Part shown: positions 24,893-57,210 of the stretch, one piece after another | How positions within the stretch are numbered: position 1 is the stretch's first letter | How the letters are laid out: every line of letters starts with the position of its first letter | NCBI RefSeq assembly: GCF_963676685.1 | Contig: NC_092347.1 | Coordinates: 99,138,001-99,202,000 of the forward strand | DNA length: 64,000 nucleotides | Origin: Mytilus edulis | Lineage: Eukaryota | Direction of reading: 5' to 3' | Notes under the pieces: generated by a model | What the model was told of the DNA's origin: nothing | Seen by the model: the letters and a program-made list of their open reading frames with translations, nothing else | The model's database searches: none | Program-made: the position numbers and the translations under genes

Positions 24893-25283
24893 TCATTCAA
24901 CAGACAGAATTCTATTCTGTTCTATTCTATAGATATAACCACATCCAATGCTTAAAGATAAAAAAAAGTCATTAAACAGACTGAAATCTATTAAAAATAT
25001 AACCACATCCAATGCTTAAAGATAAAAAAAAAAGTCATTCAACTGACTGAAATTTATTAAAAATATAACCACATCCAATGGTTAAAGATAAAAAAGTCAT
25101 TCAACTGACTGAATTCTATTAAAAATATAACCACATCCAATCCTTAAAGATAAAAATTAAGTCATGCAACAGACTGAATCCTATGAAAGATGTAACCACA
25201 TCCAATGCTTAAAGATAAAGACTCATTCAACTGACTGAATTCTATTAAAGATATAACCACATCCAATGCTTAAAGATAAAAAG
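24893..25283. repeat. About 60-66-bp tandem repeat x6 derived from the M4/stop-codon segment of paralog C
   Basis: ATATAACCACATCCAATGCTTAAAGATAAA-type core occurs six times; the rightmost copy is the coding LSLSIGCGYIFNRIQSVE-stop. Confidence 0.9.
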
Positions 25284-28200
25284 AACACCATCATCCCGAT
25301 TCTGTCTACCATTAAGGCGAGACTGATCCATAGTTCTGAGTTTTCTGCAATCTCTGCTTCCGGTTCCGATAGGCTTATAGATGACGTGTTTCCCAGTTCT
25401 TCCTCCTTATATTTTCTATTCCTGTCCAGGATGTTGAATATTTTGGCCAATGATTTATCCTTCAAAGAAAAAAATGAAGATTTATATAATTTATCGTTAT
25501 AAAGTTCTGCATCTTTGACTGTCATAAACGCTGATGTGTCTGTCGTGTACTCAGTTTTGTTTGCCGTGTGCGCAGCTTTGTCTGTCGTGTATGTACATGT
25601 AGCTTTGTCTGCTGTGTTCACAGATTTGTCTGCCGTATGCACAGCTTTGTCTGCCGTCTACGTTGTTCTGTCTGACATGTACGTAGCTTTGTCTGCCGTG
25701 AACACCGTTTTGTCGTGTATATGGCTTTATTTGTCATGTACGCACTGTGTTTGTCGTCTTCGTAGTTTTGTCTGCCGTGTGCGTATCTTTGCCTGTAGTG
25801 TGTATCTTTGTCTGTAGTGTGCGTAGCTTTGTCGTTTGTGTTCAAAACCTGTTGTTTCTTTTTTGTGTGTCATTACGAAATTTTATCTACCGTATACGTA
25901 GCTTTGTCTGCCGTGTATGTGGCGAACTGTTTGCAGCTTTGTCGGTCGGCTTTGTTTGTCGTTGAAGTTTGTACTTTTATCAATAACAATTTGATTGTTT
26001 AGAGCTGCAGACGAACCATATGTTCCCTCGTCAACTCCAAAAAAGTGTACTATTCACTTTAATAAAAATACATTCTTCTGACATCAGACTCGGATTTCTC
26101 TTGAACTGAATTTTAATGTGCGTATTGTTATGCGTTTACTTTACTACATTGGTTAGAGGTAAAGGGGGAGGGTTGAGATCTCACAAACATGTTTAACCCC
26201 GCCGCATTTTTGCGCCTGTCCCAAGTCAGGAGCCTCTGGCCTTTGTTAGTCTTGTATTATTTTAATTTTAGTTTCTTGTGTACAATTTGGAAATTAGTAT
26301 GGTGTTCATTATCACTGGACTAGTATATATTTGTTTAGGGGCCAGCTGAAGGACGCCTCCGGGTGCGGGTATTTCTCGCTACATTGAAGACCTGTTGGTG
26401 ACCCTCTGCTGTTGTTTTTTATTTGGGCGGGTTGTTGTCTCTTTGACACATTCCCCATTTCCATTCTCAATTTTATTGGTAACAGTTTTGTTTTCACTTT
26501 TGCTACTTACCATTGAACTTTTTTAGCTGATGAAGACAAGTTTAGAAATGTCTATGGACAAAAAAGACTGATATTATTTTCTCGCAGTCGAGACAAATCT
26601 CAGATGAGAATATGTAAGAATATAGAAATATGAAAGTAAAAACTTGTTTAAATCTTATAGCAGTGTACAATATAGATAATTCAATAGTTTCGCTTACGCA
26701 GAAATGGGATAATGGGATATAACCCTTTAAATGGTTTTGTAATATTGGTCACTGAACATAAACAAACAATAAAAGATAAAAGGATACTTACACATTTCGG
26801 TGAAGATTGTTTTACGTAATCTGGTTTTACTCTCGGAACATCTATCCATGTTAGTCTACCAAGCAGTTTCAATACATAGAATTTTAACCAATGTGGCATA
26901 TGTCTATCCCCTCGATGATGTAAGTTCAATACCAACACTTGCCAACACGACGATCCACCAGATAATATCATCGTAAAACTGAAAAAGGAGGCTGGAAAAA
27001 AAAAGAATATGAAAAAAAAATGAAATTTTCATTGTTCTTATCTTAAATACAAAAAAAAGAAATATATATAAAAATTATATTAAAAAGGACAAAAAAGCAG
27101 AAGAAGGTAACATCGCACAATTTAAAGATAATGGGGTCTATAAAGAGGCGTCGTTTAAACCTGTTTAAAGTACTAAAACGTTTGTGCTTGGTGCTAATGC
27201 TATTTTTCGTTGGAATTGCATATACTGATGTTTATTCTATCTTTTTAATTGGTGTACTAGTTAATAGGCCGATCTTCGAAATGAAATATAATTTATTGAC
27301 AGTAGGCAAGCTTTTGAAAAGTCAAAAGGATTTGAAGTTCTAGGAGTGTAGCTTAAATACTTACATATCCAAGGTGTTTCGTCAGCAGATGGGGGTAAAT
27401 GGTCTGCTATCAATAACTGGAATACAGACATTGCTAACATCACGGTCAATTCTAAACCCACTTTCTCTCCAGAGTCAGCTGGTAGGAAAAATCCTAGCCC
27501 TGCTACCAATGTTACCAGTAAGGAGGGTATCAGTATATTTGTGACGTAATAGTTTGGTTTCCTCTTTAGATTGATATAAAATGTAACATCAGGATACGGT
27601 TCCGGACAACAACCGTAATATAGTTCGTGTCTGATGGCTGGTATGTCTTTAATGATCCATTCTACATTCTCCTTCACCGAGGAAAGATCTCCTGCACCAA
27701 GTTTTGTAGAGACATCAAGTTCAAACCCGTTGTATGACCATGAACCGAACATCAGAGAACATATTTGGCTATCGTAAGGAAATTTGGCCACCGAAACTGG
27801 ACATAATGCTTCTATTTTGGAGGGAAAGTTGTAAGTAACATAGCCATCGGGGTAGATATGAGCTCTGAACTTCTCAAAACCGTAGAATTCCTCCGAAATA
27901 CTGCAAAACAAATGGATAACTTAGTCTATACCAATCACGATACAATAAGAAGTTATTTCTACGCATTTGTATCATAAGATATCCATATCAATGAATTCAC
28001 ATAAACAGTATCTGTTTTAAATATAAATGTTTAATATCCTTTCTTTCTATCAGTGAATATGACTCGTTACCGAACAATGCAATTTTCTTTTTTCATGAGC
28101 ATATAAAATAATGCTAAATTGTAATTACATTGTTTGCTTCAGCTTTCTTTGTTGTCGTGATATATAATAGCTAGTTGCTTGGTTTTTGTTTCTTTTATGG

Positions 28201-31200
28201 ATGTTGCTTTTGATTTATATAGCAGGAGAGTCGGGTATTGAGAGCTTAGTCTTAAATAAAGTTTTCTCATATATGGCATTTCCTGTACCTTATATTGACT
28301 CTTAAATAATAGCTGAAACACTTTCATCTTGTTATCCATTCGTTTGGTGTGTTTGAGCTTTTGATTTTGCCATTTGATACGAGACTTATCGTTTTGAATT
28401 TTCCTCGGAGTTCAGTATTTTTTTTATTTTAAATTTTTCCATGATAATAGTAGTGATTCCCTGTCTGCATGAGCTACGATGATTAGTAAATATTCCCACC
28501 AATTCCAATTTGCAAACTTTGTTTGGTTTGTTTGGATGGGTTATTTACATTGACTGTATACGTACACTTCACAAGCTTTGTTTGGTTTGTTTGGATGGGT
28601 TATTTACATTGATTGTATACGTACAATCCACAAACTCAACAAAAAGCATTGCATACGTACAATTCACAAACTCAACAAAAAGCACAAATTGCATGATTGT
28701 TTACCGAGATTTTCGAGAAAAATTACTTGTCTATATTTTTGTGTTCTCCGGTGAATGATGATTAAATTTTCATAGTCTTTTTATAGAAAAAAAAAACATT
28801 TAGATTCATTATTTCTATTAACATATTATATGTATTACCTTTCATAAAGTGTAATATCCGGTTTCCAGATGAGATCTATGGGTAATACTATAGACTTTGT
28901 TCCGTTATAATCGTCAGGGTTCCACTTCAGATGACAGTCTACCCAGGCCTATAAAAATAATAGCAATCCCCATAAGTGTCTCACTCATATTAATATATTT
29001 GTTTAAAATACTTCTGAGATCATGTCAACAAAACAGTCGTGTGATGGTCCAACGACATGTCAAAGACGAAGCATAAGCAAAGGTTATGACTGTAATAATT
29101 ATCTTAAACCGTATTACAAAACAGTCTTGTGATGGTCCAACGACATGTCAAAGACGAAACATAAGCAAAAGTTATGACTGTAATAATTCTCCTAAACCGT
29201 ATTACAAAACAGTTGTGATGGTCCAACAACATATCAAAGACGAAACATAAGCAAAAGATATGACTGTAATAATTCTAAACCGTATTACAAAACAGTCTTG
29301 TGATGGTCCAACGGCATGTCAAAGACGAAACATAAGCAAACAATATGATTGTAATAATTCTCCTAAACCGTATTACAAAACAGTCTTGTGATGGTCCAAC
29401 GACATGTCAAAGACGAAACCTAAGCAAACAATATGATTGTAATAATTCTCTTAACCCGTATTACAAAACAGTCTTGTGATGGTCCAACGACATGTCAAAG
29501 ACGAAACCTAAGCAAACAATATGATTGTAATAATTCTCCTAAACCGTATTACAAAACAGTCTTGTGATGGTCCAACGACATGTCAAAGACGAAACATAAG
29601 CAAAAGATATGACTGTCATAATTCTCCTAAACCGTATTACAAAACAGTCTTGTGATGGTCTAACGACATGTCAAAGACGAAACATAAGCAAACAATATGA
29701 CTGTAATAATTCTCCTAAACCGTATTACAAAACAGTCTTCTGATGGTCCAACGACATGTCAAAGACGAAACATAAGCAAAAGATATGACTGTCATAATTC
29801 TCCTAAACCGTATTACAAAACAGTCTTGTGATGGTCAAACGACATGTCAAAGACGAAGCATAAGCAAACAATATGATTGTAATAATTCACCTAAAAAATA
29901 TAAACCGTATTACAATCATCATCGCTGGACTGTTTCTAAATGGGGATAGACAAATATTTAATCACGTCACTTGAGTGTATTGAAGAACATTTTCCAGGAT
30001 GCTTTTCTTCCAACATTTCTTCGGACACTTTTATCGTAGAACAGATCTTAGACCATATCTTAGGAAACTTTAATCTCAGAACATATAGAAAATCATTTTT
30101 ATTTCAGAACATATAGAAAATCATTTTTATCTCAGAATTAATTTTATACTAGGAAATAATCCCGGTTGAATCCGGGGTCGAAGTTCAACATGTTAACAGG
30201 TGAAAGGGTATTCAGAAAAATTACAAATATCATAAAAAATAAATCAAATGATACATACACCACCCCCCCCCCCCCCCCCCTCTCCAGGTGGAGAGAAACA
30301 CTATTTTTAAAGCATGTCTTTTTTTATATAAATTCCCTGATGGAGATTTAAAGCTTAGTCGATTCGTAAAGTGAGGGGAGATTAGTCGATGCCAATGGAA
30401 AAACTTGAGTTTACCTGGATGGAAAAGTTTCTTATTAATGTTGTAAACTATCATCTCGGAACTTGTATAAGAAGATTTTATCTTGGAACATATCTTAAAA
30501 CATAGCTTTTGTCTTAGAAAATATCATAGGAAACTTTTATCTTCTTACTTTTTCATTTTTTGCCTTGTACATCTAGCTACCTATTGTGTTGGCATAGTTT
30601 CTCTTAACTCGGCATTCTTAATTACTTACATCCTTTAGTCATCCTTTAATATAGACGGTGAAATAAATGTAAATAATTCTAACTAATAAATGAATTACAA
30701 TAGTAAGAAATATACTAACCAATCGCATCCATACGTTAAACTGTACTGTCTGTTCTGGTTCGTTCTGCAAAATGAAAGGGAAACAATAATTATGATATGA
30801 GATAGCTTGAGATTCCGTATCACACTATTTAAAGTGAACTAGTTTTACAACTTAATCTGATTCCCGTAAGAAATAAAGTATTCGCATTATCGAAGGAATT
30901 TCACTATTTTACAAAGTTTGGCCCGAGGACTTACAGTAACTACGATTAAAGTGTTATAAGATTAACTCACATAACTTAGAATTATATTCCGCTGCATCTG
31001 GCCCACAAGTAAAAGGGATCGCTTACATGGAGGGCTCAATTATTCGGGTTAATATAAGATTGTGGTCAATGATAGAAGATATTATAAAGAACATTTAATT
31101 GCTGTTTCATATCAATTTTGAATTAAAAGCTGTTGCTTAGACAATTTGTTTCCAATATGTAAATGTAAACTGTAAAACAATGTTTAAATAAATCTGCAAT

Positions 31201-32750
31201 TATTGGACATGGTATTGCGTTTGAAGCAGTCCCAGTGTCGTTTAAAGACCATACAAGTGTAAAATTTTCCACTACGCTTATCTTTACAAAGTTTAGTACT
31301 AACCAGTGTTATGAGCTGTCTAACTGCCATATCAACAGTAACTGGAACTGTTTCTTTTCCAGGACAGACTGGTCGGACATTAGGGCCATAATCAGCTAAC
31401 AGGTCCGCTGTTAAATTATCTAACCTGGATTGGGAACCTGTAAAGTACATGTGAAGAAATAATGTTATATATCTTCATCTCTGTTAAATTATCTAACCCG
31501 GGTAGAGAACCTGTAAAGTACATGTAAAGAAACAATGTTATATATCTTCATCGCTGTTAAAATATGTAACTTGGATTGGGAACCTGTAGAGTACACGTGA
31601 AAAAACAATGTTATACATCTTCATCGCTGTTAAATTATCCTACCTGGATTGGGAACCTGTAGAGTACACGTGAAGAAACAACGTTATATATCTTCATTCT
31701 TTCAAAGCGGGACGTACTTTTTATAAACGACTAATGAAATTATAAAGGAGCAAGACATTACTTCTACAATGCGGGCATTGTCAAATTGTGTTTGGTTTAT
31801 TAGTTCGAATATCCCTGTGGTAACTTTCGCTTTTTTTCTAACAGTTCTTCATCTAAAATACGAAATCATAAATACAAAGGAAGCATTTAATTATTTATGA
31901 AAATTCAAAACAACTCTGTTTTTCCAACTCGATTAACAATTTCAAACAATTATCCACACTTTTCCATCAACTCGTCAATATGAATTGTCCAACTAGACCC
32001 AACTTTTAAATTGACTCGCATCTACTATGGTATATATTGAAATCTGTTTAGAGGGTTCATGTTCAACGGTTCACACGTCTTAAACATGCATGAAATATTC
32101 AAATATATGTATTATTTTGTATTTCAAAATGTTTAACGATCTTTAACCTTTGTGAATATCTTTCTTTTCTTAGAAAACTAAATATGTCTGACTTACCGAA
32201 AGAATCTGAACTGCCGGATGATTCATCAGTTTTGTCGTTAATAATCTTACAGAAACCTGTCAATATATTGTAAAAAAAATCGTAAAATCAATAGGAACTT
32301 GAGAAATATATACAAAAGAGAATATCAAGGTGTAAAACTGGCGATAGATGAATAGAAATAAATTATATAAAATTAACTCATAAAAATAAATTAATGATAA
32401 AGATATGAATAATCCTAAATAACATGTATGTTCATTTCTATGTAATAAAGATACACATATTTAATCTCATTTATGGGGAATTAAAGAACGAGATGAATGA
32501 TTGAATGAATGTTTGTTTATTGGGGTTTTTTTTTTTTTTTTGTATTTTTGTATTTTTAACATGTAAAAAATCACTTACATACAATGTGCGAGCTTTATAA
32601 AGAGTGTGTATATTTTGTTTTTATGTGGTTTTTTTTTTGTTTTTCTTTTGTTTGTTATTTTTCATTTTAACATGTACAAAATCACTTACCCAAGTTGCAA
32701 GTACAGAAATAAACAAATAAAATAACGCTTCCTAATTTTAAAACATCCAT
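25223..32750 (-). CDS. Nicotinic acetylcholine receptor alpha-type subunit (alpha9/alpha10-like), paralog C; 8 coding exons, about 460 aa
   Basis: Exons: 32750-32690 (signal peptide MDVLKLGSVILFVYFCTCNL), 32256-32197 (60-nt extra exon), 31437-31304, 30764-30720, 28948-28839, 27900-27365 (Cys-loop CPVSVAKFPYDSQIC, loop C YYGCCPEPYPD, M1-M2), 26991-26792 (M3), 25459-25223 (M4). GT-AG and in phase; total 1383 nt. Confidence 0.94.
25535..25955. repeat. Degenerate 21-bp minisatellite in the last intron of paralog C
   Basis: Consensus approximately GTAGCTTTGTCTGCCGTGTAC; translates as (Y/H)TADKAT-like heptads on the minus strand with frameshifts. Confidence 0.8.
26075..26476 (-). repeat. Dispersed repeat family 3 (ATAAAATTGAGAATGGAAATGGGGAATGTGTCAAAGAGACAACAACCC...)
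   Basis: Related copies at about 16440-16655, 50041-50100 (plus) and 52775-52850. Confidence 0.8.
29029..29915. repeat. 88-bp satellite x10, intron of paralog C
   Basis: Unit AAAACAGTCTTGTGATGGTCCAACGACATGTCAAAGACGAAACATAAGCAAA...AAACCGTATTAC; starts at 29553 and 29641 are 88 nt apart. Confidence 0.95.
31406..31697. repeat. 73-bp tandem repeat x4 derived from the splice acceptor and exon start of paralog C (134-nt exon)
   Basis: Acceptor-equivalent AG at 31438, 31511, 31584 and 31657, exactly 73 nt apart. Confidence 0.9.
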
Positions 32751-33819
32751 TCTTAACAAGGCAAAACACGAAAATAATACTTCTCTAAATCTCTATTAAA
32801 TTGGTTATTTGTAATGGCCAGACAAAACCTTTTTAAATATATAATCTTTGTGACGAAAGGTTATATAACTATACAATTGACAAGTAAACGTAACGTATTC
32901 AATGTGTTTTCGTTTTTATTGTGTTTATAGTTAAATTACAGGTGTCAGTCTTTGAAGTTGAGTTGACGGTGTGCTTGATTAAATAATGCCAACAATTAAT
33001 TAGTGAAGACAATTACTCATTTTTATCTAATTAAGATATCTAAAAATAAACTAATTGACAAATTAGAAAATTAGGGTAAAAAAAATTTCTTTTTCGTTAA
33101 AGATATTATTACTTAAAAAACATGAGCCTAAATTGAGTATATGAAATAAGATAGTTGAAAGAAACTTGACATGACTGGATTTTGTTGGAATTTATGAAAT
33201 TTAAAGTATTATATATCACAACCCAAGAATAACAAGGAAAAACGAAAACGTTTACATTTACAAAGCGAACATTCCATCAAGGATATGTCTAGAAACTTGA
33301 AATGTCGAAAAAGAGATGTCGAAATTCCATATATACAAAGAGCTCATGATGCTGATACATCAACAGTGGATATTTCAAAGGGACTACTACCCCGAGTGTT
33401 CAAACAGAGTTTTAAAAAGGTTGGTTTTTTTCTAATCCCTGGTTTTATTTTTTGTAGAAATTCATCATTGATGAAAGGCGAACGACAAAGAGTATCATAA
33501 AATGAATTGTGAAAGGTTAACATATTTTTTTAATAATAACTGCAGGTTATCATTTTTTTTTAATCAAAACTGCAGGTTTCCATGAGACGATTTATGTGTA
33601 CCATACCAATAAAACAAAGATTTATTTATACTTGGAATATTATCATATTTGCAGGATACGAGATTTATTTATATCAGGAATAGGATCCCAGTATACGAGG
33701 TCCGTATCCCGAGTCCTTTAATATTTCTACCATCTTTTAAGAAGGACGTTAAACAAAAATGTAAATGTAAAGATGCTTAAATTTTGTTATTTAAAAAATA
33801 TTTATTAAACTTTCCACTT

Positions 33820-34015
33820 TGTTTAATTCTGAAATGTATAGGGTGTATAATTGTTTAATTCTGAAATGTATAGGGTGTATAATTGTTTAATTCTGAAAAG
33901 TATAGGGTGTATAATTGTTTAATTCTGAAATGTATAGGGTGTATAATTGTTTAATTCTGAAATGTATAGGGTGTATAATTGTTTAATTCTGAAATGTATA
34001 GGGTGTATAATTGTT
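33820..34015. repeat. 32-bp minisatellite x6
   Basis: TGTTTAATTCTGAAATGTATAGGGTGTATAAT repeated nearly perfectly. Confidence 0.95.
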
Positions 34016-34064: not shown

Positions 34065-35200
34065 AATCAAATCAAATCAAATATTTTATTGTCATATAAA
34101 CTTTACAGTTTGTGACCAACATATATTAATACAATAAACATAAATACATACATATTAAACATACAAAATATCAACAGCATTAAAATTTATAACAACAAAC
34201 AAGTTGTTAAGAGTCCCCTGCCCTCAGTTCTAATGACTTTTTCAAGAAGGATCCTAACTTATTTGTTTGTAAAGGTGATGATGGATTTAGTAAATAATGA
34301 ATTTTTCTTCTTCATTTAAATTATTAAAGTTATTATTTTCTGTACATATGTGATGAAAAAAGTCATTTCTTAGAGTTTTATTATACTCACAATATAGTAA
34401 AAAATGTTTCTCATCCTCTAGTATTTTACATTTATGGCAAAGACGTTCCTCTCTTGGGATTTTAAAATATCTCCCCTTTTCAATCAAGAGGGAGTGATCA
34501 CTTATTCTAAATTTAGTGATTAATCTCCTTATCTGAAAATTAGATGTATTTAGATAATATTCTAGTTTGTAATCTTTTTTAAGTTTTTTATAGAGAAAAA
34601 ATTTACTTTTATCATCGATGTTTTGAAATTTATTTTGAATTAAATCTTCATATCTATTTTTCATTTTTAACTTTATATCGTTTTTTATTTTATTTACATC
34701 TTTTATGTCCTTACAAGTAGAAAGAATATTAAGATCAACGTTAGTCTCTTTAACTATATTTTTAGCATATGTATACCATGAGTAAGTTCCTGTCAAATCT
34801 AGAGACTGTGCTAGAGAAAAAGCTTCCTTTAACAATGGATTAATATTATTATTATTATATAGTCTAGCTAAATATAAAAGGTTTGTGTTTTAATAAAGCA
34901 TTCTATAGGCAATCTTCCTAATTCAACTCTTGCTCCTAAATTGGATGCATTTTTTCTTATCCCTAGAGTAGATTTACAAAATTTAAGATGCATATTTTCT
35001 ATGGGGGTTTTGTCTATAAAATCAAGTTGATTAATTTCTTTTCCTGAAGTTAAGGCTCTGCTTTTGGCTCGATGAAAAGAAATATATGTATCCAAATATG
35101 TTACTTCTGAATTATAGGTCATAATTGGTTTTACTAAAGAATCAAAAAGATTATTTGCTACTTTTATAGGTAGATTATTCAATGATTTTATACTCAAAAC
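34065..35200 (-). mobile_element. 5'-truncated, frameshifted non-LTR retrotransposon (LINE) ORF2 3' end
   Basis: ORFs 34868-35197 (LFDSLVKPIMTYNSEV...ELGRLPI) and 34287-34835 (FRISDHSLLIEKGRY...EERLCHKC...EDEKHFLLYC, C-terminal CCHC of LINE ORF2). Ends in AATAAA plus an (ATTTG)n tail. Clade not assigned. Confidence 0.85.
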
Positions 35201-36296: not shown

Positions 36297-36692
36297 ATCA
36301 AAATTGAAGATAACTCTATGGTTTGGATATTAGAGATTTGATGATTTTAAGACATAGTTCGTGTTACTTTCACCAGCACAAAATGTCTGGATTCATCACA
36401 TTTATTAGATTTTTTGTTTTTTCTATTTCTACTTCCAAATGAACTTTGCATGCACCTGCAAAAAGAGCTTTATAAAATATATCTCTTTAACACACCTGCT
36501 AACCTTCTAAAGGAGTAGGTCCAGTAAGACCCCTTTATGGCCCCAAAATATAGCAGTTTTACAAAATTGTTAAAATGTAAACTTCTAGTTACTTATTTTA
36601 AAGAAGAATGCTTCTGCTACATTAATATGGGCTGTGTTTTACAATTAAATGCACATATTCCGGGCACTAGCATCATTAAGTCATGCTAAATT

Positions 36693-37723
36693 AAACATCT
36701 AAGCTATTGACCACTCCAGCTTTCATTCACGCTATCACACTTGCTAACGCTGATATGAAGACCCATTGAGTAACTGGTAAATATCTAAGCTATTGACCAC
36801 TCCAGCTTCAAATCACACTATCACACTTGCTGTCGCTGATGTGAAGACTTATTGAGTAACGAGTAAATATCTAAGCTATTGACCGCGCCAGCTTTCAATC
36901 ACACTATCACACTTTCTGTTGCTGATGTGAAGACTCATTGAGTAACAAGTAAATATCTAAGCTATTGACTGCTCCAGCTTTCATCACACTATCACACTTG
37001 CTGTTGCTGATGTGATAACTCATTGAGTAACAAGTAAACATCTAAGCTATTGACCGCGCCAGCTTTCAATCACACTATCACACTTGCTTTTGCTGATGTG
37101 AAGACTTATTGAGTAACAAGTAAACAACTAAGCAATTGACCGCCCCAGCTTTCAATCACACTATCACACTTGCTATCGCTGATGTGAAGACTCATTGAGT
37201 AACAAGTAAATATCTAAGCTATTGACCGCGCGAGCTTTCAATCACACTATCACACTTGCTGTTGCTGATGTGAAGACTCATTGAGTAACAAGTAAATATC
37301 TAAGCTATTGACCGCGCCAGCTTTCAATCACACTATCACACTTGCTGTTGCTGATGTGAAGACTCATTGAGTAACAAGTAAATATCTAAGCTTTTGACCG
37401 CGCCAGCTTTCAATCACACCATCACACTTGCTTTTGCTGATTTGATAGCTCGTTGAGTTGCAAGTAAACAACTAAGCAATTGACCGCGCCAGCTGTCTAT
37501 CACACTTTCACACTTGCTGTTGCTGATGTGAAGACTCATTGAGTAACAAGTGAACATATAAGCTATTGACCGCGCTAGCTTTCTTTCACACTTGCTATCG
37601 CTGATGTGAAGACTTATTGAGTAACATGTAAACATTTAAGCTATTGACCGCGCCAGCTGTCTATCACGCTATCACACTTGCTATCGCTGATGTGAAGACT
37701 CATTGAGTAACATGTAAACATCT
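36693..37723. repeat. 86-bp satellite, about 12 copies
   Basis: Unit TAAGCTATTGACCGCGCCAGCTTTCAATCACACTATCACACTTGCTGTTGCTGATGTGAAGACTCATTGAGTAACAAGTAAATATC; starts at 37215 and 37301 are 86 nt apart. Confidence 0.95.
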
Positions 37724-40700
37724 ACAGACACATCGGTGTTGAAGGCCCGTAAATTGACCTATAATGGTTTAGTTTTATAAATTGTGACTTTGATGGAGAG
37801 TTGTCTCATTGGCACTCATACCACATCTTCCTATATCTATAATAATGAACGAGTTTTTACATTGTTAACTGATGTTCAATTTTATCGTTATCTTAAATTG
37901 ACCAGTGCCTTAAGACGTAAACATAAACAAAGTGTTACAATTTTTGTTGATCGGTTGAAGAAAAGAAAGGGAATACAACTTGATTATTACATAGTATGGA
38001 TTGGATTTTGTAACGTACATTATTCACACCTTGTTATTATTTCAGTTATATATAATTCTCTTTTTCAGAACTAGTAGTAAAACTAAACAGAGACAATAAA
38101 TAGTACAAAATATTTTATAACCAGAGAATAAATAGTACAAAATATTATATAACTGGTTAATATAACAAAGCAGCTGTCAATATATCTTACTCGCCCACCC
38201 GGAGACAAGTTTACAAGTTATGTGAAGTGGGTATTTAGCACATACTTACAACTTCTCGTCCAATCATATTGCTTGTAATTGCCTTCTCCGTTTCATAATA
38301 CATATTTTCCGGTGTACTTAAGTAACTATGCATGAAACGAAGACTGAAATTTCATTGTATACGAAAAATAAAAAAATGCAACCGGCTATTTTTGAATAAA
38401 ATTGGATGTCCCAAACTTTAAAAAAAAAGTTTTTACCTTGGTTTTTATACATCGTGCTCACATATATGCCTATATATATCTTATAGGGGTTTTTTAAGAG
38501 ACAATTGCCTGTAGTCGAGCCTCATGCTATTAAAATCATAATTTTAAAATATTTTGTAGACAATTAAGATACAAGCGAATATTCAGTAACGGAAATAAAC
38601 AAAACATGAAACTAGATGGTTAACTAAGTTTGTTTAAAGATTTTCTAATTAAATACGAAAAGATCTTGTTTTTATAATATTTTGTGAAATTGTAGTGTAG
38701 AGTGTCGAAAAGTCATAACTGTCATAACGGTCAACCGAATCGAGAGTACCATCGGAAGCACTTAAATTGCCAGTCTAAACATTCAAAGCAGGCTTTAACA
38801 CTTCAAAAATATCTATGTTGTTATATTCATATGTTTTAATACAAACTGTCTTTAATTATAATAAGATAAAGAACAAAAATAGTAGTAGAGTATTAACTAG
38901 ATATAATAAAATAAGTTGTGTTATGATTATCAATGAGACAACTCTTCACATGAGACCAAATAACACAGAAATTAGCAACTATAAGTCACAATAAGGCCTT
39001 CAGCTATGAGCAAAGTCCATACCGTATAGTAAGGCATAAAAGGCCCTGAAATGACAAATGTAAAATTAAATCCAAACGAGAAAACTAACGGCCTAATTTA
39101 TGTACAAAATACTGTGCGAAAAACACGAAAAACAAATGTGTAACACAGCAACAAACGACAACCACATAATTACATTAACCTGACTTGGGACAGGCACATA
39201 CAGAAAGTGATGGGGTTAAAAATGTTATCGGGTGCCCAACCCTCCCCTAACCTTAGACAGTGGTGTAACAGTACAATATAAGAAAAAAAAACATGAAAAT
39301 CAGTTGAAAAAGGCCAATTCATCAGATGGATACAAATAGAACAAAAACAGATTAAAAGTGGCAGGGTACTTGTACATCCCAAAAACAAAAAGAAACTAAG
39401 TACAGATATGAGAGTACTTGCAAGTTACTGACAGCTAATTAAAAGCCAATCATAGAAGCTGAGCTGAAACGATATCTGACAGCTTTTTGTGGGTTATTTT
39501 ATAATATATCTTTTGCTGGTTCTTTATCTTTACCGGACTGAAAGGCATACAAAAACAAAATAGAAAGTCAAACAATGTTTTTAAAGGCAATCGGGAAAAT
39601 TCATCTTTTATATGAAGGTGTGATACACGTTAATGCAAGACATATTTTCATATTGATAACTTTTTAATATTTAAAAAAGAGACATATTTCTAATGTGAAC
39701 TAAAACCCACCCATAATATAGCAAACTTAAATATAAAAATCATGTAAAATAAATAAATGATAAAATCTGATTAAGTCATAGTAGGGTCATACTAATAAAA
39801 CAAAGGATATATATTAACAAATTATATATTGCCTTGGGACAAATGTGGCTGATTTGTAATGACATTAGAATTTTATCTAACATTTTGTCTATACTAAGCG
39901 TCCAGCGATCCACAAAGATCTGATAAGCAGCAAAGCCTGCAGAAATATTACAAGCGAGCATGTCAGAGGAGTCAGTCCTGGTGGTGGTGAGCATCACCTT
40001 ATATCACTGTAGTGCAGGTAAGATTGGAAAATTTGATTTAAATTATTGTATCCTTTAAACGCATTTTTAAAAGTTATATGGCTTTTGTGCTGTGAAATGA
40101 AGCAACTTGGTATGTTTTGAATGTGGTTCCCATATTATGTCAATTACGTGGATATTCAAAAGAAATATCCTTGTAAGCTTAGTTGCTGATAATACTTTCT
40201 GCATAGTAGCTCTTGTGTCAGTACTTGTATGTTCCATGTACAAACAGTGACTATTATTAATTAGTTTATCGAATATGTTATAGACCCCATGTAAGTTAAT
40301 ATTTACGACTGATACGGTTTCGACTGGTCTGATTTTGGTTGTTTTCTATTTTACTTTTTTGCCTGCGAATCTGAGAAAGATTCCCCAGAAACGTTAAACA
40401 TATGTACGAAGAAGTTTTTTTTATTAAGAACAAAATTTTATTTTATTTCCAATTAGGGGCCCTAAACAATAACATCAATAATTTTTTTACAATACAATAC
40501 AAACAACGATATAAAAAACAAACAAAAAAACATGCGAACAATTTAAAAAAGTTTTACAAGTAATATATAATTAAAGAAAATAAATAGATAATGCATAATA
40601 ATGTAAGTGTAGTTGATAAAGATATGACCGGACGAAAAGCATGCTAATTATTTGGACTATCATCTTTCTGACTTTAATTACTATATCTTTCAATTGTCAT

Positions 40701-44160: not shown

Positions 44161-47100
44161 ATGGCTTCTAGCACATCACTACAGGCACACAAATATAAGT
44201 ATGGATTCCAAAGGTCAAGAGGAAATAAGTTTAAATGGTATCTGATCCTGGCTATCAGCATTGTCTTTGTTGTATTGGCGGTCACTGTCATAGGTCTGAC
44301 GATTTACCTCACAAGCGAAAACAACAAAACAGGTACGTATCATAGAGGTTACTTGGATACCTTCTAGCTCACAGCTTGGATTCGAGCACCATGGATGAGT
44401 TATATTTTTGTTATTTTGCACCTGATTTTTTATCATGTTCGTGATAGAGCTTCTGCTTAAGTTTTTAATGCACTAAATCACCAAAATTTCGGTCTGTTTA
44501 TCCATATTTCTTTTTGTTTGCCTATCCGGTAGATTAGCATACAAGTGATTTTTTTACTGATCTATTGGTGGTTTATGTGAGTGGTTTACTTAACCGACAG
44601 ATGGTCATATAAATGGTTTGATATTTATTGTACGCAGAGAGGATCAAATTCTCTGAACATTAGCACCATTCCCATGTATATGGAGCTAATTTTCCTTTCA
44701 AAAAATATGTTAATGTACAATATATTTCGTCATAACTGGACCAAACAAACACATTAGATAAACTATGAATTATTTGTTTTTTGCTTATGTTACTAGTTAC
44801 ATGTACGTTATGACCCCTAGTTAAAACACCTATTTTCATTGCAATAACAAGTAAAAACACACATGTACATTATAATTCCATGTAAATACACCCATGTTTT
44901 TTTTTTTGTTAATTAACAGGTGACAAAGATGCGCAATATGATTCTGGAGATGAGGACACAGGTATGACAAATATATTATAATGTTTCTCATAAACGAAAA
45001 AGTACGATTTTAATAAAAATTTTCAATGGAAGTAATAGTTGCTATTTTTCTTGTTTGCAATCTTCACGTACGTACTAAGACAATTGTTTCATGTTTATAT
45101 CGGAGTGGTTTTTATTTATAATTGAGATATTCTCCATGCCTTTTTACATGTAATGCAAATATTTTCTTCAGTTTCAACAGCACAAACGGTATCTACAACT
45201 TCCGCAACAACTAGCGTCAGCCAAACAACGCAAACGATCACAAAGTCTTCAACAGAGAGTCCAACTACTATAAAAATGACTTCATCCACTCAAAAGACAA
45301 CTCCTGATATGCTGACTAGCCATCGGTCAACAACTTTGATATCTTCTCAACAGACAACCACTGAACCGACAACTCAACAACCAACCACTGAACCAATCTC
45401 AACCACACAACCGTCAACAACTGTAAACAAACCTCTTTCTACGGAACAGCAAACAAACGAAAAACGTACCTTTTCAACTCAACAAAGTACCACAGAAGTG
45501 ATTTCGTCGACTCAAAAATCTACAATGTCAACAGAACAAAGAACAACCGAGACAATGACGTCATCAAGTTCACAAACAACTGACGAACCATCAACAGTCC
45601 AATACTCTACGTCGAATGGTCCGGTAGTGTCAACCAGTGTTTCACCATCATCAACATTACAGGTCACATCAACGGTCGATACAACAAGTACAAGTAATAC
45701 AATAGTTATATAAATTCAACAAATAATGTTCTTTAGAATTTGAAAACTGCCAAAATAGCCTCATTTTTTTAATTTTGTGCTTTTATGTTAATTGCTGTTA
45801 TGATCACTTTAACATAACCCAAAAAAAGAATTTGTTACAAACATGCTAATTTGGATAAAAGATCTTTCAGCTTATACTCATAATTTCTGATATCCAACCC
45901 ATGAAGCAGTCTCATTATAGTACTAGTATTCATTTCTCAATACAATAGCAAAAGAGACTGATATTGTTTGAATTATTTTTTAGATAAGAATTTACTTATT
46001 ACTTGACAAATTTATTTGTCACTTTCATTTGAAGAAATGTGCAAATCGACTAATCACAAATTTTAAAATAGGGAATCATAACAAAAATGGTTGAGACATG
46101 TAGATAATTTTTATTTCCACAGATTTAAAACAATCGTTATAATAACTGACTTGTAACATTTATGCGATAATGATATGCTTTTGATTTTTTTGCAGCAATT
46201 GAATTATCTGGATATAATATCAGTAGCTCATCCCCATTCTTACTAACTTGCGAGGTAAAAAATATTCCTGGATGGATTGACCTTTTGATTTATCGTCACT
46301 ATGGAAACAACCAATCAGGTCTGTTGGCTCAGATGACTGCAGGACCAATAGTTCCAACGGTTATTGTAGTCGATGATTCGCTAACATTTTCAGCCAATCA
46401 CCACAGCGATGCCATTACAATGGTATTGATGGCTCAAAATTTCGAATGCAACCATGCAGGGACGTACAGTTGTTCGGTATCTTCTGCAACTGTTGTCGTT
46501 TCAGATGAAACAGAAATTAACGGTACAGTTTTACTCGAACTATATAAATAAGAGTACATTCTCAAATCGCATCTCATGCATATAGAATGGTGAAATCTAT
46601 TTACAATATAATATTTTTTCTACGCTATGAGTTAATTTTTTCGCAGGCTAGTCAAAAGTACTATGGTGGATTTTATTGAGTATAAGGAACTAAAAAAGAA
46701 ATGTATGCAGGTTAACTTTCTTTGGTACTTAACATTGAACTAACTCAAATTAAAACTTGACACATGAATGAAATAACACGGACCGCCATATTACACACAT
46801 ACAAATTACATGTACACGAACTTACGTCACTTTGCGGTGTTTGTTATCCTTTTACATATCGACCTATAGTATTAGATTGTATCATTTGTATCTTTTAAAT
46901 TGTAAGTTATTTACTATCAAGTCTTTTGTTTAAGTTGACATGGTCGACAACAACTACATGTATACTATTTGAAACATGTTGTCTTAATTTTAAAAACCCT
47001 TGGATATAATTTTTTTTTTAACAATTTAGATAATCGCAAATAGTAAACTCATTCTGTTTTTTATTCAGTCGTTTCAGAACCACCGGCAATCTATTTTCCT

Positions 47101-48083: not shown

Positions 48084-48480
48084 AACTGAAGAGATAACGT
48101 TTCGAGATAATTGAGATTATGATATGAGAATACCAGGACAACAGTACCTAATAATTTTATATTCTAAATTAATTTTGTATATTGATACATGCTGTTTTGT
48201 TTGTTTGTTTGTTTGTTATTTTTGTGTGGGTTTACATTGCTTTATATGTGATTTGTCACTGTTTCCTTCAAGTTTTTGTTGACATAAATAGTACCTGTAT
48301 TTTAAACGAATATTTCAAAGTAAATTTGTGAAAGGAAGTAACTGACATATTAGCTACTAAATAAAACATAAACCACGTAATTAAAGTATAAAAAAAACAA
48401 GAATGAAATCCAAAAACAAAAATAAAAGATAGAAACTGGCCTGATATTTTTGCTTTCAGTGTAAGCTATCATAATATATA

Positions 48481-48790
48481 AAAAAGAAGATGTGGTATGA
48501 TTGCCAATAAGACAATTCTCCACAAGAGACCAAAATGACACAGAAATTAACAACTATAGGTCACCGTACGGCCTTCAACAATGAGCAAAGTCTATACTGC
48601 AAAGTCAGCTATAAAAGGTCCCGAAATGACAATGTAAAACAATTGAAACGAAAAAACTAACGGCCTTATTTATTTAAAAAATGAACGAAAAACAAATGTG
48701 TACACATAAACAAACGACAACCACTGATTTACAGGCTTCTGACTTGGGACAGACACATACATACATAATGTGGCGGGGTTAAACATGTTA
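48481..48790 (+). repeat. Dispersed repeat family 2 (AAGAAGATGTGGTATGATTGCCAATGAGACAACTCTCCAC...)
   Basis: Related copies at about 20490-20805 (reverse), 23237-23410, 37735-37820 (reverse), 38910-39450 and 53134-53310. Confidence 0.85.
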
Positions 48791-49081: not shown

Positions 49082-49498
49082 CAGACAATTCCCACAACAT
49101 AGAGATAAAGATAACATTATCGATTGTATCAAAGCGATCTTTATATCAACAGACAATTCCCACACACATAGAGATCAAGATAACATTATCGATTGTATCA
49201 AAGCGATCTTTATATCAACAGACAATTCCCATATACATAAAGATCAAGCTAACACTATCGATTCCATCAAAGCGATCTTTATATCAACAGACAATTCCCA
49301 TATACATAAAGATCAAGCTAACATTATCGATTGTATCAAAGCGATCTTTATATCAACAGACAATTCCCATATACATAAAGATCAAGCTAACACTATCGAT
49401 TGTATCAAAGCGATCTTTATATCAACAGACAATTCCCATATACATAGAGATAAAGATAACATTATCGATTGTATCAAAGCGATCTTTATATCAACAGA
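49082..49498. repeat. 69-bp satellite x6
   Basis: Unit CAGACAATTCCCATATACATAAAGATCAAGCTAACATTATCGATTGTATCAAAGCGATCTTTATATCAA. Confidence 0.93.
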
Positions 49499-52924: not shown

Positions 52925-52995
52925 GAACTAAAACTACCGGTTAACCGGTTAATCGGTCGAACTAAAACTACCGGTTAACCGGTTAATCGGTCGAA
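52925..52995. repeat. 34-bp direct duplication containing palindromic ACCGGTTAACCGGT
   Basis: GAACTAAAACTACCGGTTAACCGGTTAATCGGTC twice in tandem. Confidence 0.85.
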
Positions 52996-53490
52996 CGACT
53001 ATCCGAGTTACCGGTTAGGAAAAATTGTACGATTTGGCAACACTCATATTAAGCCCATTATAAAATAAGTAGAAAAGTAGTGTGTTTTTTATCTCTTTTT
53101 ATCCCATCCCGTTTCGGTTTGAGCCAGATAGATATAAGAAGATGTCATATGTGACAATGAGACAACTCTCCATCCGAGTCACAATTTATAAACGTAGACC
53201 ATTATAGGTCAAAATACAGTCTTCAACAAGGAGTCTTGGCTCACACCGAACAGCAAGTTATAAAGAGCCCCGTGTAAAACCTTTCAAACGGGAAAACCAA
53301 CGGTTTAACTATATCAAGATGTACGTAATTAGTGATGGAGTGTCAAGGAAATGGATAAATAAAACCAAGGATAAACATCCCTACGATTTATAAGAAATTA
53401 AATGGAATACATTTGAAATATATGTTATTTCTATTGATTTTATTAGAGTGTTAAATCAAACTTTCCTCCGCAAGTTAAACTTTATCAAAT

Positions 53491-54167
53491 TGTCACCGGG
53501 GAAACAAGGTGACTTGTCGGGTGTGTAACAAGAGCCTGACTGAATAGCCTCTTGTTACTGAAACTGTGTGATGCACCTGATCACACAACGAACGATTGCT
53601 GTGAATAGCAATGAGAACTCTGGAACTGAAACTCTGGTGAAACCTAACTTTTGAGACTCTGGAACTAGCGATGAATAAACCAATAATTCAGCATGGAATA
53701 CTAATACTTTTATTACAGATGGACTGTGTTCAGTGTAAAGTCCTGAGTCCGAATCTTGCTTATAAAAATTATAAGCAAGTATTTATACACAATTGAATTG
53801 ACAAGTATAGACATAACAAATAACAATTAATTTGAGTGATATTGTTCACTGACAAAGATTAAACTATTTTTAGAACTTAAAGAATAGATATTAAATGATA
53901 ATCTGATTATGACAATTAATAACATACATTATGAATAAGGTAAAATGTCACTAATTAGGTAACAGATTGAAACATGTCACTCAATGTCCAAACTAAGAAT
54001 TAAAAAGCATGTTGATTTTAAGTCCTGGTTATGAAATGTAAATAGAAACGAAATTATAAAATAAAATGAATTATAAAACACAGAGAATTAAAGTCTAAAA
54101 TATCAAAATTGAGAATTTTATATTAAAGTCCAAAATAATAAACGAAGCTGCTTTTTCCACTGTCACA
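53491..54167 (-). repeat. 3' LTR of the element
   Basis: Same 677-bp sequence as 55184-55860; preceded on the minus strand by the polypurine tract at about 54183-54171. Confidence 0.92.
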
Positions 54168-54208
54168 TATGCCTCTCCTCCCAATTAAGTCCGTCCTCGG
54201 ACTTAGCA

Positions 54209-55075
54209 CTATCTAAATCGGCCTCCTCTGCGGTTGTTATAGTGTCTGTTGTTGTTATTGGGACGCTGTTGGTTTTGGCGGGATACAAGATGGAGTTCGT
54301 GGTTAAGGTCCTGAAGTTGAAAAGTCAATTGAGAAATCGAATCCGCTTGAAAATGTACCTTTGAACATAGGTCTGCCTTTTCTTTTTCCAATGCTTGTTT
54401 TTCATTTTTCAATGATTGGATTTCATCCGTAAATTCGGTTGAACGCATATAGTAAAGATCTTGCACCATTTTAACAGTCCCGTCTTTTTCGATTACTTGG
54501 TCCTTTAATTCTTGAATTTGATCCACATATTCCTGTACGTTTATGCGCGAAGCACTTTCTTCTTTCTGTTGACGCAGGTTTTCAAGTTCTTGCTTGAACT
54601 GGTCTCTTTCTGATACGATGATTTGCGTATTCTTTAATTGAATTTTGAGTGCCTCGATGCACTTTTGCTGTTCTATATTTGTATTCTTTTCCTTGAAAAT
54701 TTTCTGCTTCACACTTTTTAATTCTGTTTTGAGCACATTTGAAATATCCAAATATTGAATGAACGGTGAATTACGCATACCAGAGAATGGTAAAGCACGG
54801 ATAATATTTTTACACTGAATATAGCTGTTTATCCTAGCTGTATCGCGCTCTTTCTGTTTTCTGGATTTCACACTAACTGATTTACTTTTGCTGTCCTTTG
54901 TAACTTTAGAAAAACACTTACTAGAATAATGTCCGAATTTTCCGCACGAATAACATCTCTGATTGATAGAGTTACAAATATAATGTTTGTGAAATTTGCC
55001 ACACCTCCCACATGCTGGACTATAACCTGACTGGATGTTCCATGGTCTCCATTGTGGTCGAAAGCTGTACTCCAT
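54209..55075 (-). CDS. Gag nucleocapsid-like protein: two N-terminal CCHC zinc knuckles + long coiled coil + Asn/Arg/Gly-rich tail (288 aa)
   Basis: Intact intronless ORF with CGRCGKFHKHYIC (CX2CX3HX4C) and CYSCGKFGHYSSKC (CX2CX4HX4C). Roughly aa 115-265 are heptad-like and E/Q/K/L-rich; the protein ends NNRRGGRFR. Confidence 0.85.
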   Translation of the reverse strand: MEYSFRPQWRPWNIQSGYSPACGRCGKFHKHYICNSINQRCYSCGKFGHYSSKCFSKVTKDSKSKSVSVKSRKQKERDTARINSYIQCKNIIRALPFSGMRNSPFIQYLDISNVLKTELKSVKQKIFKEKNTNIEQQKCIEALKIQLKNTQIIVSERDQFKQELENLRQQKEESASRINVQEYVDQIQELKDQVIEKDGTVKMVQDLYYMRSTEFTDEIQSLKNEKQALEKEKADLCSKVHFQADSISQLTFQLQDLNHELHLVSRQNQQRPNNNNRHYNNRRGGRFR

Positions 55076-55183
55076 CGCTGAATATTGTCTACACTTCTTT
55101 TCTGGGGAACTCGCTTGGCTGCTTGAGGTCTCTGGATCGTGTGCTGAGCATAGAAGTCAGCACGCCGTCGTCGTCCACCAATC

Positions 55184-55860
55184 TGTCACCGGGGAAACAA
55201 GGTGACTTGTCGGGTGTGTAACAAGAGCCTGACTGAATAGCCTCTTGTTACTGAAACTGTGTGATGCACCTGATCACACAACGAACGATTGCTGTGAATA
55301 GCAATGAGAACTCTGGAACTGAAACTCTGGTGAAACCTAACTTTTGAGACTCTGGAACTAGCGATGAATAAACCAATAATTCAGCATGGAATACTAATAC
55401 TTTTATTACAGATGGACTGTGTTCAGTGTAAAGTCCTGAGTCCGAATCTTGCTTATAAAAATTATAAGCAAGTATTTATACACAATTGAATTGACAAGTA
55501 TAGACATAACAAATAACAATTAATTTGAGTGATATTGTTCACTGACAAAGATTAAACTATTTTTAGAACTTAAAGAATAGATATTAAATGATAATCTGAT
55601 TATGACAATTAATAACATACATTATGAATAAGGTAAAATGTCACTAATTAGGTAACAGATTGAAACATGTCACTCAATGTCCAAACTAAGAATTAAAAAG
55701 CATGTTGATTTTAAGTCCTGGTTATGAAATGTAAATAGAAACGAAATTATAAAATAAAATGAATTATAAAACACAGAGAATTAAAGTCTAAAATATCAAA
55801 ATTGAGAATTTTATATTAAAGTCCAAAATAATAAACGAAGCTGCTTTTTCCACTGTCACA
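55184..55860 (-). repeat. 5' LTR of the element
   Basis: Minus strand reads TGTGACAG...GGTGACA. TATA-like GTATAAATA at about 55481-55473 is followed about 70 nt downstream by AATAAA at about 55407-55402, consistent with U3-R-U5 order. Confidence 0.92.
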
Positions 55861-57210
55861 TATCCTTACTTTATCTATTGTTTGAGCAAGTCGGCTAAAT
55901 TAAGACTTTTAAAATAGATAAAAATAAAATAAAATTCATATAGTGAAAATGCACCGCATATACAATACTAATGAATCGCTCTACAGTGAAAATGAAAGTA
56001 TAGTATCATTATTCGACAGTAAACATGACTCGCATAAAGCAAGCATCATAATGGAATTTAGTTCAATATGAAGAAACTGAATGACAAAACCTATTCTACG
56101 TTATACAACTTTAATAATTGTGTTGAAATGAATATTTTTCTGCAACAACATCTTACTTGCTAGTTTTAAATCACCTGCACGATCTGTTCGTGAAATGTCC
56201 TAAATATTCACCTATTTCGGTATATATTTCACAGCTGGATGTCTTTAGGCGCGATAAAACCCCGTTCGCATCTCTTACATTGTCTTACTAGTTTAATTTA
56301 TTTCTAAACATATACATTTTAACTAATTTTCTTCATTTTCTTCAAAAATCAAAAATAAATCGTCTGTTTATTTATCATTCTACATCAGAAGTTAATGGCA
56401 TATACAGTGAAAATGATATTTTAGGATCCGCACTTTACATACACTGTGTCCAGCCTTTTCTGCATTGGATATATCTTAATTCAAATATCATATTAATATT
56501 TTACATGCACTGCCATCTCGCCAAAGGAAACTCGGTATGTGCAATGGTGCGTCCCTTTCAGAAAACTGTGTATGCAATGATAACCCTCAAAGGGACTGAT
56601 GGGTTATGTTTGCATTATTATTGCAGTAAAAAAAGAAATTAAGGTTTTAAAAAAATCACAGCTGAACCATCAAACTCTGGATTTTGCAAATATTTTAACG
56701 AAGAAAACATACTTGTAAATGCTTTGCGTTTATACAAATAAAGCGTTTGAACTTAATTTGTCTTCATTATCTATATATAGTAAAAACACACAGTGTTATG
56801 TCGATTTGTAATCTTAATGATTTTTATTGTTGTCTTTTGTACCGTTGGATTGCTGTCTCGTTGAGATCAATCCCACATACTTTTTATTCATATTGAAAAC
56901 CAAACCATAATTTTGGTCATGTAAACTCGTTGCATTACTCTTTTTTTTATTTTACACTTGATCGTCATTTGTACAAACGATGAGAAACAGTAAAATAAAT
57001 TCGGTGGTGTATATGTTATTTTATTTATTTTATTTATATACAGAATTTTTTTTTTATCAATATAGCAATACTATATCAATTTTGAAAAATAGAAATAAGG
57101 ACTCGATTTTAAGATATTTTTCACGGAACACTTTGTTTCAGTCTTTCTCTCTTTCAGTCGAAGTTCAAAACAACGGAGGTGTTTGAAAAATTATAAAAAA
57201 AAATAATAAT

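Follow-up and report, generated by a model that had tools for sequence, protein, structure and literature searches.

The locus examined here raises the question of why a short retroelement that encodes none of the enzymes of retrotransposition should nevertheless carry a single, intact gene. In a 64-kb window of the Mytilus edulis genome (the window being the whole stretch of DNA analysed, to which all positions below refer), nucleotides 53491-55860 make up a complete long terminal repeat (LTR) element of ~2.4 kb on the minus strand. Our analyses indicate that this element is structurally intact, non-autonomous and TR-GAG-like, and that its sole gene specifies a reduced Gag protein consisting of a nucleocapsid (NC) double zinc knuckle, a basic linker, a coiled coil of ~160 amino acids (aa) and a tail rich in Arg and Gly (R/G). 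On balance, we consider it probable that the element belongs to a non-autonomous LTR family whose reduced Gag serves the family's own propagation. The evidence for this view, and the other explanations that can be given for the same observations, are discussed below.

The only coding capacity of the element is an open reading frame (ORF) of 288 codons, running from ATG to TAG at 54209..55075; as this sole long ORF lies on the minus strand, the element reads from right to left, and all of its features described here are given for that strand. An earlier sequence-only reading of this DNA had described one uninterrupted ORF of this size in an element lacking both pol and a capsid, and each part of that description has been upheld. 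The ORF fills 867 of the 1016 interior bases (85%), and the chance expectation in the window of ORFs so long is ~2e-5 (window stop-codon frequency 0.066). No protease (PR), reverse transcriptase (RT) or integrase (IN) domain is found in the element by Pfam. For the window protein, Pfam reports zf-CCHC only, below the gathering score, with no Retrotrans_gag, PNMA or capsid family, and for 21 diverse members of its family weak zf-CCHC and generic coiled-coil families only. Two AlphaFold models contain the knuckle module and long helices only, without the two short-helix bundles of a retroviral or Ty3 capsid, and Foldseek searches of PDB and BFVD gave no significant match. The best PDB matches, all of them sub-significant, from Foldseek and a PDB profile search were the NC proteins of Rous sarcoma virus (RSV), human immunodeficiency virus 1 (HIV-1), murine leukaemia virus (MLV) and equine infectious anaemia virus (EIAV) and the Lin28 knuckles, with no capsid among them. 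A hidden capsid fold is thus ruled out by Pfam, the PDB profile search, both AlphaFold models and Foldseek.

Four parts can be distinguished in the protein, and they agree with the features earlier proposed for it. The first is a double CCHC knuckle module (aa 22-54; 54914..55012), located by regular expression and homologous to Gag-Pol NC, in which a CX2CX3HX4C knuckle (aa 22-34) and a CX2CX4HX4C knuckle (aa 41-54) are separated by six residues. It is followed by a basic linker (aa 55-110; 54746..54913; 13 K/R vs. 4 D/E) with a helix at aa 72-89, the conserved residues K70, S71, R77, D78, R81 and K89, and an (E)LPF motif (P96, F97). The third part is a coiled-coil region (aa 111-269; 54269..54745) composed of two long AlphaFold helices with heptad periodicity. 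The model based on 17 close relatives places helices at aa 72-93, 111-174 and 180-269, and that based on 21 diverse relatives at aa 72-89, 102-109, 111-175 and 178-268; the predicted local distance difference test (pLDDT) score exceeds 90 in the long helices at aa 111-175 and 178-268, and in the second model that of the knuckle module is raised to ~90. The heptad periodicity observed at aa 180-269 was reached by none of 2000 shuffles, and it is weaker at aa 111-174. The protein closes with a basic Arg/Gly/Asn-rich tail (aa 270-288; 54212..54268) that ends NNRRGGRFR. What had been called a coiled coil of about 150 aa with an RGG-like tail is accordingly a heptad-periodic helical region of ~160 aa and a basic R/G tail. 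An interpretation of the heptads as part of an Env- or fusion-protein-like molecule was rejected, as no signal peptide or membrane span is visible in the sequence and the ends are basic.

The ancestry of the knuckles, which had been taken to be of the nucleocapsid type, is indicated by the weaker matches to the profile of this protein family, which include canonical retroelement proteins aligned at profile positions ~15-75 only. One of these (P0163) carries Retrotrans_gag and PNMA domains followed by knuckles (hhalign, 96.4%), and another (P0214, 771 aa) has a capsid-like N-terminus, then CX2CX3HX4C-X6-CX2CX4HX4C, then CFSK, and then PR, RT and RNase H (hhalign vs. the family, 97.5% probability, E 6e-12); the alignments of these two proteins extend over 44-47 columns. 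In a third (P0153), PR comes directly after the knuckles. Hence, as judged from these alignments, the N-terminal module of the family protein is Gag nucleocapsid by descent. The Gag homology ends where the knuckles end, and neither the profile search nor Pfam detected any relative of the coiled-coil part beyond the family's own members. That lack of relatives would be in keeping with a different origin, viz. a host coiled-coil gene, without retroelement ancestry of its own, that an LTR element had captured or that chanced to lie between two solo LTRs. We find this explanation scarcely credible, however, in view of the homology of the N-terminal module to Gag-Pol NC, the precise abutment of a primer binding site (PBS) and a polypurine tract (PPT) on the LTRs, the intronless ORF, and the fact that the entire architecture, start and tail included, travels together in all members.

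The distribution of the family was examined with a profile of 17 sequences (282 positions), which was searched against 1.84 billion cluster representatives at the 50% identity level and matched 253 representatives at E<=1e-3, 79 at E<=1e-10 and 34 at E<=1e-30. Among the matches listed, ~40 of 150 representatives match at least 200 of the 282 profile positions, nearly all of them end to end; these stand-alone proteins are mostly 250-370 aa in length, and the longest full-length match among those listed does not exceed 486 aa. A Pfam scan of the ten longest or extended family-type matches revealed no PR, RT or IN. The proteins closest to that of the window are all from Mytilus (M. galloprovincialis, 93% identity over the full length; M. 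edulis fragments, 95%; M. coruscus, 80%), and 32 Mytilus proteins show 53-95% identity to it. The named members come from M. galloprovincialis, M. edulis, M. coruscus, Pinctada imbricata and Tegillarca granosa, with many further ones from ENA/Logan assemblies, and in Pinctada several near-identical copies are present on different long contigs. The species returned by a second profile search were almost only Mytilus. Scans of JGI metagenomes, IMG/VR and GTDB genomes for other copies found no family member; their sole match (L001) was rejected as an unrelated GC-rich canonical gag that shares the knuckles alone and has no repeats. Proteins of this stand-alone design thus form a family with many copies that is present in no fewer than five species of bivalve, which indicates, as had been supposed, that the element does not result from a single accidental internal deletion.

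The features on which selection appears to have acted are seen in an alignment of 21 diverse members that show 19-34% identity to the window protein. Invariant in all 21 are M1, the eight knuckle Cys/His residues, G26, G48, R77, R81, P96 and F97. The mean pairwise identity is 46% in the knuckles, 31% in the linker and 16% in the helical part, in which 18 of the 21 members have kept significant heptad periodicity; the net charge of the N-terminal 105 aa lies between +10 and +20 in every member, and an R/G-rich end is present in most family members. The common design, which the window protein fits, thus comprises a MEY-x-FRPQW start, two invariant CCHC knuckles, a basic KS..K.RD..R linker, (E)LPF, a heptad helix of ~160 aa and an R/G end. 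A coiled coil that evolves fast and yet is ever-present beside a conserved nucleic-acid-binding part is what would be expected from functional selection along active lineages, and a non-coding passenger ORF would not remain open at 20-30% identity. Taken together, these protein comparisons indicate that the family is old, multi-copy and conserved across bivalve orders. Two further observations concern its variants. At least eight M. edulis gene models (P0008, P0010, P0011, P0016, P0018, P0020, P0021 and P0023) start exactly at the internal Met100 and are without knuckles, which might reflect the way such models are annotated or a sub-lineage that lacks the knuckles. A distant member of 364 aa from a Logan assembly (P0164) has extra C-terminal CCHC-like knuckles in addition to the N-terminal pair.

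The element that carries this gene possesses a complete set of candidate sites for transcription, tRNA-primed reverse transcription and integration, together with the single conserved ORF and no enzymes. Its 5' LTR (55184..55860) and 3' LTR (53491..54167), each of 677 bp, are identical at 677/677 positions, so that the alignment confirms the earlier claim of identical LTRs; on the element strand they start TGTGACAG and end GGTGACA, which gives TG..CA termini (TGT..ACA) and the direct repeat characteristic of an LTR retrotransposon. The exact repeat is 3 bp longer than the LTRs (680 bp, to 54170 and 55863), and this extension, the strand and the flank junctions are additions to what had been described before. 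When the LTR and the interior were compared with the whole window by BLASTN, only the places occupied by the element itself were recovered, with no second copy and no solo LTR. Positions 1-410 of the LTR are AT-rich (23% GC) and U3-like, and the remainder (42% GC) is R-U5-like. Motif searches placed a putative promoter motif, TATAAA, at position 381 of the 5' LTR (55475..55480), and a candidate poly(A) signal, AATAAA, at position 454 of the 3' LTR (53709..53714); directly after TATAAA, a palindrome search found a perfect palindrome of 25 nt (55448-55472). A U3/R/U5 layout based on the AT-rich part, TATAAA, the palindrome and AATAAA is plausible.

The two priming sites reported earlier were also recovered. 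A PBS-like, TGG-initiated 18-mer, TGGTGGACGACGACGGCG, lies at 55163..55180 after a 3-nt spacer from the 5' LTR; a tRNA gene scan found none in the window. The leader between the 5' LTR and the ATG, as read from the sequence, is 108 nt long (55076..55183), and the R-U5 and leader region folds slightly better than shuffled sequences (z = -2.0); its U5 part contains perfect hairpins immediately 5' of the PBS. At the other end, the PPT, GGGAGGAGAGG followed by CATA (54168..54182; the full 15 nt being GGGAGGAGAGGCATA), abuts the 3' LTR, its purine run of 11 nt standing 4 nt ahead of the LTR.

The junctions of this copy are less straightforward. A target-site duplication (TSD) of 3-8 bp was sought at every boundary shift of up to 3 bp and none was found, the 4-6 bp duplication that serves as a criterion for such insertions included; the bases that adjoin the element are CAAAT on the left and TATCC on the right. 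In the left flank (53479..53490), the 8-mer ACTTTATC at 53479-53486 stands 4 bp from the left end of the element, and it occurs again in the right flank at 55868-55875, 7 bp beyond the right end; two random flanks of 30 bp would have an 8-mer in common with a probability of ~0.02. The three extra shared bases (54168-54170 and 55861-55863) read TAT on the plus strand, which on the element strand is the ATA between PPT and U3, and an unprocessed U3 end of linear cDNA would bear exactly that ATA. The absence of a TSD is unexpected given the complete identity of the LTRs. From 0 differences in 677 bp, the upper bound on the age of the copy is ~0.4-2.2 million years under rates of 5e-9 to 1e-9 per site per year, which are assumptions and not Mytilus measurements.

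The sequence-only reading had called the element very young and recently active. The identical LTRs are the one argument for this statement, which stands to that extent, but without a TSD the copy is not a textbook fresh integration. It is possible, if somewhat doubtful, that the element is real and its extreme youth overstated, the copy being something other than a fresh integrase-mediated insertion. The routes by which this could have come about (viz. recombination between two copies, gene conversion, integrase-independent end-joining of cDNA, and an assembly join or polishing across near-identical repeats) share between them that same modest probability. The lack of a TSD at any boundary examined, the extra TAT that corresponds to the bases between PPT and U3 as in an unprocessed cDNA end, and the occurrence of ACTTTATC just outside both ends all point in this direction. 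Against them, a 3-bp match has a chance of ~0.02-0.03 in such AT-rich DNA, the window has no gaps or Ns, and neither the ORF nor any cis site is damaged, as would be expected of a recent copy.

How the family is propagated can be considered in the light of these results. As the element encodes no enzymes, RT, RNase H, IN and probably PR must, on established retroelement biology, be supplied in trans. In the mechanism that we propose, the TATAAA-containing 5' LTR (LTR position 381) would drive the synthesis of an RNA of ~1.7 kb ending after the AATAAA of the 3' LTR, and this RNA would be both mRNA and template. The protein would bind the element RNA by its knuckles and basic segments, probably in cis during synthesis, and the coiled coil would multimerise it into a ribonucleoprotein (RNP), like LINE-1 ORF1p in logic and not in ancestry. 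Such an RNP may give nucleic-acid chaperone activity and hand the RNA over to a putative autonomous helper of the Gypsy type, which would contribute its particles and its PR-RT-IN; the helper's RT would prime from a tRNA at the PBS, and the helper's integrase would act on the TGT..ACA ends. The packaging and chaperone role might be performed inside helper particles or as an ORF1p-like RNP. Within the non-autonomous-family reading, we suggest cis-packaging and chaperoning as the role of the protein only tentatively, at a little below even probability. A bolder version, in which a long-lived LTR lineage without any capsid propagates as an ORF1p-like RNP, its RNA entering the particles of unrelated helpers or being reverse-transcribed without a Gag shell, seems to us unlikely. 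If it were true, an LTR element would have converged on the strategy of the long interspersed elements (LINEs), and the junctions of this copy, which resemble those made by end-joining, would record an insertion that took place without integrase.

Several points weigh against the reading that we favour. Besides the missing TSD, the RNA binding, oligomerisation, cis action and helper dependence of the protein are all properties that we infer; the context of a short LTR element is known from the window copy only, the other members being known as proteins; and many database copies are shortened, frameshifted or part of chimeric gene models, with partners that include tetraspanin, STAND NTPase, EGF, ankyrin, MFS, COR, LINE endonuclease and an integrase tail. 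Decay and chimerism of this kind are also what one commonly meets in a transposon family that has dispersed and left many dead copies. Finally, the protein searches are blind to an autonomous element that combines this ORF with a separate pol ORF, to which a rival explanation can appeal: an autonomous LTR lineage of bivalves would have this ORF as its normal gag, placed first and encoding an unusual Gag without a capsid, and would carry pol in an ORF of its own, so that the window copy would simply be a derivative that has lost pol. One chimeric gene model (P0026), which fuses the C-terminus of an integrase to the family ORF, also speaks for such a lineage, but its family match begins only at profile position 57 and it appears to be just another of the numerous chimeric models. 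Among the 150 best representatives there is none that fuses the coiled-coil part to PR, RT or IN, and the lengths cluster at 250-370 aa. Moreover, the ORF stops 26 nt before the PPT and 41 nt before the 3' LTR, and with a conserved tail so close to the PPT a deletion of pol would have to be exact. We therefore judge the autonomous lineage to be a distinctly unlikely source of this ORF.

It may also be asked whether the protein serves the element at all. It could instead modulate or interfere with a helper or competitor retroelement, acting as a dominant-negative NC decoy comparable to Ty1 p22 or to Fv1-like restriction by a Gag-derived protein, or it could have been co-opted by the host. A protein that has an NC module in common with canonical Gag-Pol and no capsid could compete for RNA or for Gag partners, and long-term conservation would accord with such a role. 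The family is, however, multi-copy and dispersed, with intact LTRs, PBS and PPT and many decayed copies, which is the behaviour of a transposon and not of a single-locus host gene, and we hold interference or co-option to be very unlikely. Interference and service to the element itself are not mutually exclusive.

Among known systems, the nearest category of the Mytilus element is TR-GAG. The plant TR-GAGs are terminal-repeat retrotransposons with a GAG domain and without PR, RT or IN, and are regarded as semi-autonomous, as quoted in PMC13570524. They share with the Mytilus element a short LTR-bounded structure, a PBS and PPT, the lack of PR, RT and IN, and one Gag-derived ORF; they differ in keeping a capsid-type GAG, in place of which only NC knuckles, N-terminal and followed by a coiled coil, are present here. 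Our search of the literature found no report of a TR-GAG in animals or bivalves and no description of a knuckle-plus-coiled-coil LTR element, the Repbase and Dfam catalogues lying outside that search. In Gag proteins the order is capsid, then NC, then protease. The CX2CX3HX4C knuckle, 6-residue linker and CX2CX4HX4C knuckle of the Mytilus protein are those of Ty3/Gypsy and retroviral NC, but here NC opens the protein and a coiled coil follows it, so that the order of capsid and then knuckles seen in a Ty3/Gypsy Gag is absent. LINE-1 ORF1p is likewise a small element-encoded protein, with a rapidly evolving, multimerising coiled coil and basic nucleic-acid-binding parts, an RRM and a C-terminal domain (CTD). 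The combination of a coiled coil with basic nucleic-acid-binding parts makes this an analogy and not a membership, since the Mytilus protein has no RRM or CTD and no match to Transposase_22 or any other ORF1 family of Pfam, its domain order is reversed, its RNA-binding part is of the NC type, and its carrier has LTRs. ORF1p coats its own RNA (PMC5940361).

Other non-autonomous or pseudo-LTR elements are more distant. The LTR elements known as TRIM and LARD are non-coding. The Mytilus element is non-autonomous like these, and biv-TRIM occurs in the same host group, but the conserved ORF of 288 aa that fills 85% of the interior excludes it from TRIM and LARD. Detailed descriptions of non-autonomous elements in bivalves are few, and biv-TRIM has no canonical PBS and no autonomous partner has been found for it (PMC6934838). 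The Mytilus element differs from biv-TRIM in its conserved ORF and canonical-looking PBS. The Troyka elements are virus-like LTR elements of marine invertebrates, Mytilus included, of which non-autonomous derivatives are known, and they have CG..CG termini, 3-bp TSDs and a CX2CX8-10HX4C finger (PMC12440569). Membership in Troyka is ruled out by the TG..CA termini and CX2CX3-4HX4C knuckles. Penelope-like pseudo-LTR elements carry a hammerhead ribozyme in their repeats and encode RT and GIY-YIG; the present element was rejected as one of these because it has no RT and, with no Rfam family at the gathering score in the window, no hammerhead.

The significance of the family lies in what it has kept. 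The usual view of non-autonomous LTR elements is that they either encode no protein (TRIM, LARD) or preserve a Gag of the capsid type (TR-GAG). In this family, just the nucleocapsid module, fused to a coiled coil, has been retained, apparently across bivalve orders, and these orders separated hundreds of millions of years ago. This would suggest that the RNA-binding and chaperone part of Gag, combined with a multimerisation device, can be the sole function worth carrying for a retroelement parasite, and the element may be copied by a route not yet described for LTR elements. A short protein, an element of 2.4 kb and many natural variants would also make a tractable system for understanding how the RNA of a satellite retroelement is chosen by its helper. 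As present annotation treats the ORFs of the family as host "CCHC-type domain-containing proteins" and fuses them into chimeric models, recognising the family would clean bivalve genome annotation.

The window surrounding the element has 32% GC and no N, and in an Rfam scan of its whole length no family reached the gathering score. Two ORFs, at 34287-34835 (minus strand, 182 aa) and 45153-45713 (plus strand, 186 aa), have no Pfam match. Satellite-like arrays are present at 29028-29895, 36692-37724, 49082-49498, 24931-25293, 7536-7815, 31406-31697 and 33819-34015, with units of 32-88 bp in 4-12 copies that match at 86-98%; similar short dispersed arrays in bivalves have been reported on Helentron-type elements (PMC7492417). 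About 500 bp to the left of the element, a 34-bp tandem unit of palindromic arms, ACCGGTTAACCGGTTAATCGGT, is present in two perfect copies (52925-52996). Also just left of the element is a dispersed repeat of ~170 bp (53128-53297), with further copies at 23231-23413, 37737-37840 and 48476-48663 (66-85% identity), which is probably a miniature inverted-repeat transposable element (MITE) or a short interspersed element (SINE). Three ORF pieces of Cys-loop receptors lie on the minus strand at 5259-5870, 16725-17276 and 27261-27911, each matching Neur_chan_LBD and the start of Neur_chan_memb (E 1e-25 to 1e-27), and these paralogous pieces, spaced ~11 kb apart, look like a tandem cluster of Cys-loop ligand-gated ion-channel genes.

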